Source: Dendrobates tinctorius
Lineage: Eukaryota
DNA: 64,000 nt
Direction: 5' to 3'
Assembly (NCBI RefSeq): GCF_039654945.1
Contig: NW_027361700.1
Span: forward strand, 12,834,001 to 12,898,000
The position numbers and the translations under genes were made by a program. Position 1 is the stretch's first letter. Each line of letters starts with the position of its first letter. Of this stretch, positions 59,845 through 64,000 are shown one piece after another. Under the pieces are notes generated by a model. It ran no database searches, had not been told where the DNA came from, and worked only from the letters and a program-made list of their open reading frames with translations.

Positions 59845-60009
59845 GCGTGGATTGGGCGCTGGGAAATCACGTGTCCTGCAGTCACATGGTCAGGGAGGAA
59901 AAAGGGGGTCCTTTTTGGTGTAAATCTGGACTCTAATTCTGTAATATATCACGGTACCTCGTAAAACCGACACTAAAACGTCCCGGCCTACAAATCATCC
60001 GGCCAAATT
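59845..60009 (+). promoter_or_regulatory. HoxB7 promoter and conserved 5' UTR
   Basis: Reverse CCAAT (GATTGG), E-box CACGTG; the leader GGTCCTTTTTGGTGTAAATCTGGACTCTAATTCTGTAATATATC...CCAAATTATG resembles the mammalian HOXB7 leader as I recall it. Confidence 0.7.
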
Positions 60010-60406
60010 ATGAGTTCATTGTATTATGCCAATGCTTTATTCTCCAAATATCCAACTGCAACTTCTGTCTTCCCATCCGGAGTGTTCCCGGAGCAAACTT
60101 CGTGCGCCTTCGCCTCCAACACCCAGCGGCCGGGCTATGGCAGTGGGAGCGGGGCGTCCTTCCCGGGAGCCATGGCCGGGATGTACAGCAACGGGGGCAG
60201 CCTGCAGACCCCGGCCATGTACCCCCCCTCCGGGTACGGGCTGGACGCGGCCCCCTTTAATATGCACTGTTCCCCGTTTGAGCAGAACCTTTCTCTGATG
60301 TGCTCCGGAGACCCCAGCAAGCAGAACTGCACAAAGAGCGAACAGAGAGACCCCGACCTGCACAGTGAGAGCAGCCTCCGGATCTACCCCTGGATGAGGA
60401 GCACAG
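60010..60406 (+). CDS. hoxb7: Homeobox protein Hox-B7, exon 1
   Basis: [15 protein letters not shown]...[12 protein letters not shown]...RIYPWMRST; donor G|GTAAGA (phase 1). Confidence 0.98.
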
Positions 60407-60747
60407 GTAAGAGGGAGGAGAGGGGCTCCAGGCGCCGGGAGTGATCCATCACTGGCTGCAGGGACACAGAGCAGCCTCTGCCCGGCAGGCTGGAGAGTAG
60501 TGGCACCAGGTATTCCTGGGATTGGGGAACAAGCGAGCCCCATAAAACCAGGGCTGAGGAGCGACGCAAACACCAGCAGGGATGATACACGGCGCAGGGT
60601 GCGGGATTTACTGGGGGCTGCAGATCCTCAATGTGCAGTAAGTGGCATAGATTCCAGCAATTCATGGGAAGCATTCCACGGAAATAGAGAGGCAGCTCAT
60701 CAGGGACAGGTTTATTGTGGAAATGCTTATCCTATTCCATATGTACA

Positions 60748-60779
<32 letters not shown>

Positions 60780-60782
60780 CCA

Positions 60783-60820
<38 letters not shown>

Positions 60821-60822
60821 TA

Positions 60823-62131
60823 CACTGGTCAACAGCATTTTTGGTGCCAAAGATATTTCATCGAATTTAGGGTATTTTTGGGGTGCTGATTCTGAATATG
60901 TCATCAGTTTTGCCAGATTGGCTCAAGTTTTTGAGATTTTTGGTATCTTATTTATAGCACTTGTTGGTAAATGCGACGCATCATCTCATTAATTTCTTTG
61001 GATTAGTACTTGAACTGAGCAGTTCTCAATATAGTTTTGTGTTAATTAGTGTTCTAAAAGTTTGTTCATAGCTTGATTTTTGCACTAACTTTATGTTGTT
61101 GTCTGTTTTCCAGTGAAAAGCATGAACTCATCAAGAAGAAGTTGTCTTAACGATCCAGACTCATTCTGTTACATTTGTGGTGAATACACACTGCCAAAAC
61201 ATAGAAGAAACATAACAGACTTCGTAAAAAAAGTGTATTTTGCCTATTTTGGGGTTATGCTTGGGGACCAAGACAAGTTTTGGGCACCACACATAGTGTG
61301 CAAAGCATGTATCGAATTATTACGAAAATGGAGCAAAGGACAAAGAAAAAGCTTCAAATTTGGTGTTCCAATGGTGTGGAGAGAGCCAAAAAATCATCAT
61401 GATGACTGTTATTTATGGTAAACACAGGTACAGGCACATCTTCACAATGAGGGACAGGCCTTCTTGCAGATTCCATGTTACTCCCATTTTCGTTTCTTAT
61501 GCTTATTGAATCCTTGCACTTGCACTGCACAGAAATAACAGTCATCATGATGATTTTTTGGCTCTCTCCACACCATTGGAACACCAAATTTGAAGCTTTT
61601 TCTTTGTCCTTTGCTCCATTTTCGTAATAATTCGATACATGCTTTGCACACTATGTGTGGTGCCCAAAACTTGTCTTGGTCCCCAAGCATAACCCCAAAA
61701 TAGGCAAAATACACTTTTTTTACGAAGTCTGTTATGTTTCTTCTATGTTTTGGCAGTGTATATTCACCACAAATGTAACAGAATGAGTCTGGATCGTTAA
61801 GACAACTTCTTCATGATGAGTTCATGCTTTTCACTGGAAAACAGACAACAACATAAAGTTAGTGCAAAAATCAAGCTATGAACAAACTTTTAGAACACTA
61901 ATTAACACAAAACTATATTGAGAACTGCTCAGTTCAAGTACTAATCCAAAGAAATTAATGAGATGATGCGTCGCATTTACCAACAAGTGCTATAAATAAG
62001 ATACCAAAAATCTCAAAAACTTGAGCCAATCTGGCAAAACTGATGACATATTCAGAATCAGCACCCCAAAAATACCCCAAATTCATTAAAATATTTTGGA
62101 CACCAGAAAAAAAAATTTTTTTCGTTGACCT
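60823..62131. mobile_element. Fold-back (palindromic) derivative of a Chapaev-like DNA transposon in the HoxB7 intron
   Basis: Ends CACTGGTCAAC / GTTGACCT(gap), preceded by TTA. Arms ~60862-61414 and 61533-~62084 are near-perfect inverted copies encoding CYICG...DQDKFWAPHIVCKAC...WREPKNHHDDCY(FC), a Cys/His pattern like the Chapa zinc-finger domain. Confidence 0.8.
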
Positions 62132-63362
62132 NNNNNNNNNNNNNNNNNNNNNNNNNNNNNNNNNNNNNNNNNNNNNNNNNNNNNNNNNNNNNNNNNNNNN
62201 NNNNNNNNNNNNNNNNNNNNNNNNNNNNNNNNNNNNNNNNNNNNNNNNNNNNNNNNNNNNNNNNNNNNNNNNNNNNNNNNNNNNNNNNNNNNNNNNNNNN
62301 NNNNNNNNNNNNNNNNNNNNNNNNNNNNNNNNNNNNNNNNNNNNNNNNNNNNNNNNNNNNNNNNNNNNNNNNNNNNNNNNNNNNNNNNNNNNNNNNNNNN
62401 NNNNNNNNNNNNNNNNNNNNNNNNNNNNNNNNNNNNNNNNNNNNNNNNNNNNNNNNNNNNNNNNNGTGCACTGGAGTTTTCCTCAGAATGTAAATTACAG
62501 TTACTTTTTTTACTTATCTTCTCTGTTATATCCCAAAGTATCTAAATTACCTGTCCCAGTTATAATTGAAATATACCCCAATGTATCTGTTGGAATGTTT
62601 ATCCCGGAGTATAGGAAAGATGTATATCTTTGCATTTTTCTATCCAGGAGTAGTTTTCCCAGTCTGCATATAGCGCTGGTATCTAGAATATGGATAATTT
62701 ATTGTGTGAGAAGTGAATGAAATAAGTTTGCTGATAGTCACATAAAGCTGAGCTGTAAGTCAGCTCCTACAGGCTTAATAGGAAAGTTTCTGCATGTAGT
62801 ATCTTCGTAATGATAATTTGAAACAGGGATAATCCCCCCATTGACCACTCATCTTCCCAAAAGGCTGACCAAATATTCATCCAGCAATTTGTCACAGTGG
62901 ATCTAATCTGACCACAAACGCGTGTGCTCCATATAAACACATGTGTATTGTGATGTGCCCAGACAAGACCTAATGTTCTAGTCATTATTCTTTCCCTCTC
63001 ACTTCTATCTAAATGCTGGTTGTCTACAGAAAAACCCTACAAAATTAAATATCATCTTACTAATGGTGTGTAGGCCCCCACTGGAGAGCATATCTGATTA
63101 CTGAAGCCCCCCATAGATACTTATACCAATACCTATCTATTTATTAATTATTCTTTCAGTCCCCTGCACAGAATAGCATTTTGGATTACAGCCCCCCCCC
63201 CCACAGTCTTACCTATCTGATTAATCCTGGCCCGTAGTGCCCCACAGGACTCCAATTCTGAACCCCATGTATCTGACAAATCATGGAAAAACAAGAACTA
63301 TTCTAGAACCTAGAGAAAATGGTGCTGTAGGCTTTAGAGATGCCTTGCTATTTGGAGCCTAG

Positions 63363-63725
<363 letters not shown>

Positions 63726-63787
63726 CCAGACCCTACAAAAGACTGGTGCCCCCCACACGATCCACTGGCTCTCCTGGATCCTGTCAT

Positions 63788-63795
63788 ACTACCTA
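63788..63795 (+). promoter_or_regulatory. miR-196 8-mer seed match in the HoxB7 3' UTR
   Basis: ACTACCTA, ~60 nt after the stop codon. Confidence 0.75.
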
Positions 63796-64000
63796 GATCC
63801 CTTTTATACTCTAGGGTTAGCCCCCTGCCCCCCGTGCCCAGTGTGGTGACAGACTAGGCTCATCTTGATGTGACTCCATATAGCGACTCTCCTTCACACT
63901 TGTCAACACTCCAAAACTGAGAGACCCTAACAAATCCAACGATTGTGACTGTGTGTAGCTCCTCGGAGACCCCCAGGTGTTTGTGTAGGACTGTGCTTTG

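Follow-up and report, generated by a model that had tools for sequence, protein, structure and literature searches.

At its 3' end, the stretch of Dendrobates tinctorius DNA analysed here (64,000 nt, hereafter the window) carries the gene hoxb7, whose two coding exons are separated by a single intron (Table 1). A first-pass annotation of this DNA had placed the end of exon 1 in phase 1, on a G at 60406, and the coding sequence agrees: the last base of the exon is a G, the donor GT follows at 60407, and the YPWM hexapeptide is encoded near the exon's end. The best protein match to exon 1 is the Hox-B7 of Ranitomeya variabilis, with 89% identity. Exon 2 is preceded by ...taatattgcag and ends with the hoxb7 stop codon at 63723-63725. 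There is a further AG at 63426, 45 nt upstream of the true acceptor, which is in frame and open; splicing to it would place 15 extra aa ahead of the homeodomain. This 45-nt segment is likewise open in R. variabilis, and it is probably by chance that these 15 codons are free of stops. In some reptiles, NCBI annotation contains Hox-B7 "isoform X2" or "Hox-B7-like" proteins of 164-188 aa with no homeodomain match, and these short entries may be predicted intron read-through products.

Table 1. Features of the hoxb7 gene and of the element in its intron (window coordinates)
Feature	Position	Strand	Remarks
hoxb7 exon 1, coding part	60010-60406	+	397 nt; 132 codons + 1 base, phase 1
hoxb7 intron	60407-63471	+	3065 nt, including 334 N
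(TATC)n microsatellite holding the insertion	60740-60822		TTA at 60820-60822, candidate target-site copy
Left terminus of the element	60823-60869	+	Starts CACTGGTCAAC; lacks an A/T run, as do the 3' ends of full-length relatives
Sense arm	60870-61414	+	Inverted copy of transposon 5' UTR and ORF start (arm comparison)
Candidate 3' splice site	61084-61113	+	ACTAAC branch motif at 61084-61089, T-rich tract, CAG
Conceptual chimeric exon	61114-61421	+	102 codons to TAA; ZAD-like zinc module ending DCYLW
"Spacer"	61415-61529	-	Native ORF continuation of the antisense copy; reads ...DCYFCAVQ..., then SARRPVPH... past a frameshift
Antisense arm	61530-62131	-	Element's original 5' portion; 5'-type outer end, AGGTCAAC with A/T run
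Run of 334 N	62132-62465		Starts ~3 nt short of the element's expected right end
hoxb7 exon 2, coding part	63472-63725	+	Homeodomain; true acceptor AG at 63470-63471

The intron holds, at 60823-62131, what is likely to be a non-autonomous fold-back derivative of a cut-and-paste DNA transposon of the Chapaev3 type (CMC superfamily). Its two arms (60838-61417 and 61530-62109) show 98% complementarity and are separated by 112 nt, and RNA fold prediction renders the stretch as one near-perfect hairpin of ~590 bp (-1035 kcal/mol). Comparison with related proteins by tblastn showed that only the first ~100-135 codons of a transposase are present, twice, and that no catalytic part of the transposase exists anywhere in the 64 kb; therefore, the element is a non-autonomous derivative. 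The fold-back junction lies at 61414/61415. We considered whether the 112-nt spacer is a separate loop sequence and rejected this reading, as the ORF of the antisense copy runs on through it. The antisense arm has a TGA opposite the AGA of the sense arm (61134); DCYFC is preserved in it, against DCYLW followed by a stop in the sense arm. The N run occupies the place of a (TATC)n-type microsatellite of ~330 nt in R. variabilis.

Family and history of the insertion

Chapaev3 transposons have been described as having a 3-bp TWA target-site duplication, termini that start with CAC (e.g., CACWGSCCAAC), and ORFs of 485-561 aa, the encoded protein being a DDE transposase of ~485-561 aa (Novick et al., 2011, PMC3014272). 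The left boundary of the frog element reads TTA/CACTGGTCAAC (60820-60833), with a CAC terminus as in Chapaev3, and the visible part of the right end, AGGTCAAC in reverse complement, fits CAC-AGG..., its last 3 nt lying under the N run. The left flank is TTA (60820-60822) and the right flank is under the N run, so that a candidate target-site copy is seen on one side only. Two complete relatives of ~2.5 kb, L002 (2621-5128) and L003 (2622-5123), were found in public assemblies; the former is bounded by TAA/CACAG...CCAGTG/TAA, with TAA on both sides. Full-length relatives at the protein level measure 560-568 aa and occur in animals as distant as crab and spider. The CAC terminus and the TTA flank, together with relatives of ~560 aa that show 3-bp duplications, therefore support the "Chapaev-like" label given in the first-pass annotation, an assignment made on termini, flank, and protein size.

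The frog element resembles Chapaev3 in its CAC termini (CACTGGTCAAC versus CACWGSCCAAC), in its TWA-type flank, and in the size of its relatives (~2-2.5 kb, ~560 aa). It differs from the elements of that description in lacking a catalytic part and in its architecture, in which the 5' end is folded back and the arms are long and nearly identical; the account of Chapaev3 in PMC3014272 contains no such form. The N-terminal module encoded by the arms (~99 aa) has 2612 related clusters at E ≤ 0.001. A word search with this module returned a best match of 73% identity, and gave neither near-identical copies nor a transcript showing use of the native acceptor. L002 and L003, which lie on Mb-sized contigs of two ENA assemblies, share 72-77% DNA identity with the frog copy, and crab and spider proteins are ~65% identical. 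This pattern of sequence identity among the frog copy, L002 and L003, crab, and spider is compatible with horizontal spread.

The ends of the element bear on its original orientation. In the relatives, an A/T run follows ...TCAAC at the 5' end and no such run is found at the 3' end. Compared with these, the frog element has a 3'-type end on the left and a 5'-type end on the right; therefore, the original insertion would have been antisense to hoxb7. Between the arms, the outer 47 nt show 9 substitutions and a 10-nt indel, the inner 545 nt only 2 substitutions, and the antisense copy extends 112 nt further along the native ORF than the sense arm does. On these sequence differences, the sense arm would be a recent inverted copy, with a very rough age of the order of 1-2 million years, calculated from 2 differences per 545 nt at an assumed rate of 1e-9 substitutions/site/year, an age that gene conversion would make appear lower than it is. 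In R. variabilis, the hoxb7 locus (L001) can be aligned to three blocks of the window (59960-60420, 60528-60817, and 62477-64000), with 84-92% identity. Its orthologous intron has no such element and only an uninterrupted (TATC)n in its place (14.4 kb compared), and the insertion is therefore specific to the lineage of this frog.

While the anatomy of the element, its frame, its family, and its absence from the orthologous intron are observed, the order of events is one that we infer, as is the non-use of the acceptor. The transposon would have inserted into the (TATC)n microsatellite, antisense to hoxb7, after the split from the Ranitomeya lineage. Subsequently, an inverted copy of the first ~590 nt would have taken the place of the transposon's interior, joined at 61414/61415, probably through a template switch or through recombination between subterminal inverted homologies. 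As a result of this step, one copy of the transposon 5' UTR and ORF start would now be sense to hoxb7, and the branch point, pyrimidine tract, and CAG of 61084-61113 would be the transposon's own 3' splice-site module in front of the ATG. The in-frame match of this module with the phase-1 exon 1 would be a one-in-three coincidence. In the present gene, either the whole fold-back would leave with the intron or the site would give only rare, unproductive transcripts. The anatomy illustrates that a fold-back derivative can convert an antisense insertion into a splice site on the sense strand.

The candidate acceptor and the encoded module

The first-pass annotation had drawn attention to the sense arm for an acceptor derived from the transposon and in frame with exon 1, made up of an ACTAAC branch point at 61084-61089, a T-rich tract, and a CAG ending at 61113. 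All of these components are present as described. The acceptor sequence ttttccag ends at 61113, the branch A (61088) is 25 nt from the AG with no AG between them, and the transposase ATG (61122) follows the AG itself (61112-61113) at a distance of 8 nt, in keeping with the origin proposed for the site. It had also been claimed that this site is at least as consensus-like as the real acceptor, and this holds with a crude matrix of approximate frequencies: 61113 ranks third among 158 intronic AGs and the true acceptor seventh. With the same matrix, five other intronic AGs besides 61113 also score above the true acceptor, and the score alone is therefore no predictor of use. Two decoy acceptors, at 62625-62647 and at 61734-61756, score above both 61113 and the true site, and both run into stops within 8-14 codons.

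The acceptor seems to belong to the transposon itself. In 100,000 first-order Markov simulations of the transposon 5' region, a post hoc test, an equally good acceptor appeared within 30 nt of the ATG in 3.5% of the runs; when a CTAAC branch motif and the lack of an AG in between were required as well, the figure fell to 0.026%. The module as such therefore does not look like a product of chance. In another relative, L004, ...ttcttttcatag stands 6 nt ahead of the ATG, with an AAG/GTATGT donor 149 nt upstream, and the frog copy has a weak TTG/GTAAAT donor 147 nt upstream; a further relative, L005, has no such AG before its ATG, so that conservation of the acceptor is partial. For 8 of the 9 captured transposases that they studied, Cosby et al. 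(bioRxiv 10.1101/2020.05.07.082677) reported acceptors located in front of the ORF. Because of its position 8 nt from the ATG, the 0.026% chance in simulation, the likeness to L004, and the pattern reported by Cosby et al., we infer that the acceptor probably belongs to the transposon as the 3' splice site of an intron in its 5' UTR.

Conceptual translation bears out the product that had been predicted. When the final G of exon 1 is joined to 61114, the frame reads V-K-S-M-N... and stays open to the TAA at 61419-61421, which gives a protein of 234 aa (132 + 102) that keeps YPWM and has lost the homeodomain. Three more particulars of the first-pass annotation proved accurate: the antisense arm does have a TGA where the sense arm is open, paired with the AGA at 61134; the last Cys of CYFC is lost in the sense arm, which ends DCYLW-stop; and the hairpin, with its 98% complementary arms and a predicted energy of -1035 kcal/mol, does cover the site. 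The description of the appended part as a Cys/His-rich transposase domain stands as regards a conserved set of Cys and His residues; the part itself is better described as a ZAD-like zinc module that is without its last conserved ligand. Overall, the sequence observations made at first pass are confirmed, and the interpretation placed on them, a homeodomain-less chimeric isoform or a splice trap, is partly supported.

Eight positions of the module are conserved in 40 relatives (C8, C16, C19, C60, C63, H92, C96, and C99), and in the sense arm W stands at the last of these, C99, so that the last zinc ligand is lost. A Pfam search of the frog module gave nothing significant and no zf-AD match; relatives gave sub-threshold zf-AD (PF07776) matches, the best of 26.8 bits against the Pfam gathering cut-off of 28. 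An AlphaFold model of the module has a mean pLDDT of 85. A Foldseek search with this model placed ZADs in nearly all of the top 14 ranks, with E-values of 0.06 or weaker, TM scores of 0.5-0.57, and rmsd of 2.6-3.0 A over ~66 residues; the structures matched were those of M1BP, Grauzone, Pita, CG2712, Serendipity-d, and ZNF276. Like the ZADs of insect C2H2 proteins and of vertebrate ZNF276, the frog module has two CxxC pairs. However, it has in addition a second set of conserved ligands (C8, H92, C96, and C99) that is absent from ZADs, and it is located at the N-terminus of a transposase and not at that of a zinc-finger array. ZADs are homodimerisation domains (PMC12649048). The module is therefore not obviously a DNA-binding domain, and it is incomplete in the frog sense arm. 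A ZAD-like fold would thus occur, with a second Cys/His set, at the N-terminus of a very large transposase family (61122-61418 in the frog), and a literature search found no report linking ZADs to Chapaev-type transposases.

Possible use of the acceptor

We consider that the probable state of the locus, and the likeliest, is that of a fold-back remnant with a cryptic exon that would be silent or used at noise level. The 234-aa HoxB7(1-132)/ZAD-like chimera is most likely a correct conceptual translation and not a working isoform, judging from the DNA. A protein search with lengths widened to 252 aa found no HoxB7 protein, chimeric or normal, from the same species, and neither the 99-aa ORF of the sense arm nor the 144-aa product of unspliced exon 1 was on record when looked up as exact sequences. 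In vertebrates, according to the exon-definition model, an acceptor that has no good donor downstream is poorly recognised. The best donor downstream of 61113 scores 2.2, and those at 61418 and 61428 score 1.1 and 0.8, compared with 7.0 for the true donor (crude matrix). There is no AATAAA downstream of the acceptor, and only an ATTAAA at 62085, inside the duplex. Long inverted-repeat duplexes in mRNA favour nuclear retention and editing, and an mRNA made with 61113 would keep the long duplex. Acceptor 61113 itself sits inside the ~590-bp predicted hairpin and is base-paired once the second arm exists. Its pairing partner is transcribed ~720 nt later, and therefore splicing factors may engage the site ahead of hairpin formation; earlier in vivo studies of long-looped hairpins are in line with this. 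Also in favour of use, this acceptor is the proximal one, it is strong, and it was probably shaped by evolution for splicing.

Could the acceptor nevertheless be used regularly, to give a minor isoform in which the HoxB7 N-terminus with its YPWM, devoid of the homeodomain, is joined to the ZAD-like module? We find this quite unlikely. Such a protein would be a nascent host-transposase fusion, potentially able to titrate Pbx or to dimerise. In favour of it, 102 codons lie open in frame, the acceptor scores above the true one with the crude matrix and looks evolved by simulation, the module is modelled with confidence (pLDDT 85), transposase capture by exactly such a route is well documented, and transcripts without the homeobox have been reported for a number of Hox genes, among them Xenopus XlHbox2 (cited in PMC7040399). 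However, neither a downstream donor nor a poly(A) signal would define the exon, the transcript would carry a duplex of ~0.6 kb, and the last zinc ligand is missing. Moreover, the element is absent in R. variabilis, so that retention across species was not found, and the copy is so young that there has been no time for selection, nor is there any sign of it. The contrast between an open sense arm and a stopped antisense arm was considered as a sign of selection and was rejected: it carries no weight because it is due to a single substitution, and AGA is the ancestral state of the family. A divergence of 2 substitutions between the arms gives no power to detect selection. In its full form, in which the fold-back Chapaev3 insertion expresses the homeodomain-less HoxB7/ZAD-like chimera and the hairpin sets its amount, we hold this proposal to be very unlikely; if it were true, a host-transposase fusion would have been caught at birth in a Hox gene, with an element ~1-2 million years old.

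It is also conceivable, and in our estimation unlikely, that the element acts through RNA structure, the 590-bp intronic duplex serving as a splice trap or as a substrate for ADAR or Dicer that lowers or modulates hoxb7 output. The near-perfect hairpin predicted in the pre-mRNA and the presence of decoy acceptors in both arms (61113 and 61756) would suit such a role; against it, intronic inverted repeats are common and mostly harmless, and this duplex is wholly within one intron, which it may merely shorten. That the fold-back was produced by misassembly where a contig ends beside the N run, for instance through a chimeric long read, seems highly improbable to us. The right arm does stop exactly at the N run, and the exact look-ups found no independent contig of D. 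tinctorius with the sense-arm ORF or the unspliced exon-1 product. However, the structure is asymmetric, with one arm extending 112 nt further along the native ORF, its outer ends differ in the same way as the 5' and 3' ends of independent relatives do, the left end has a proper TTA/CAC boundary, and there are real substitutions between the arms. In addition, the gene measures 3716 nt versus 2435 nt in R. variabilis, a difference of ~1.3 kb and of the same order as the 1.3-kb element, a comparison made loose by the N run and by differing microsatellite lengths. A lineage-specific fold-back with a cryptic exon that is silent or nearly so is the reading that we prefer.

Relation to known systems and significance

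One feature of host-transposase fusions, a transposon-borne acceptor located just upstream of the transposase ORF and in frame with a host exon, is present at this locus. As in documented transposase captures such as KRABINER, SETMAR, and PGBD3-CSB (Cosby et al., bioRxiv 10.1101/2020.05.07.082677), a DNA transposon lies in a host intron and its frame fits the upstream host exon, here with an N-terminal, non-catalytic module only. In contrast to these, the frog element is a truncated fold-back that has neither its own 3' end nor a poly(A) signal, its module is incomplete, the insertion is young and not common to the related genus, and the fusion transcript is a predicted one. In its sequence features, the arrangement is the first step of a transposase capture. 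Hox isoforms that lack the homeodomain are known: XlHbox2 (= Xenopus Hox-B7), HOXA9T, HOXB6, and HOXB9v (PMC7040399). They share with the predicted frog product a Hox N-terminus with the hexapeptide and no homeodomain. Such isoforms, like host-transposase fusions, are defined at the level of the transcript. However, as far as cited, they arise from splicing or retention events of the host and were seen as RNA, whereas in the frog the alternative exon would come from a transposon.

The value of the locus is that of a clean and well-delimited candidate, although the N run hides the element's right end and the target duplication there. As it stands, it represents a lineage-specific transposon insertion in an amphibian Hox intron that offers an in-frame cryptic exon. 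If the junction from exon 1 to 61114 were used, the locus would rank as a very recent case of transposase capture, in a master gene of development, and it would provide a natural test of a long intronic hairpin against a strong proximal acceptor.
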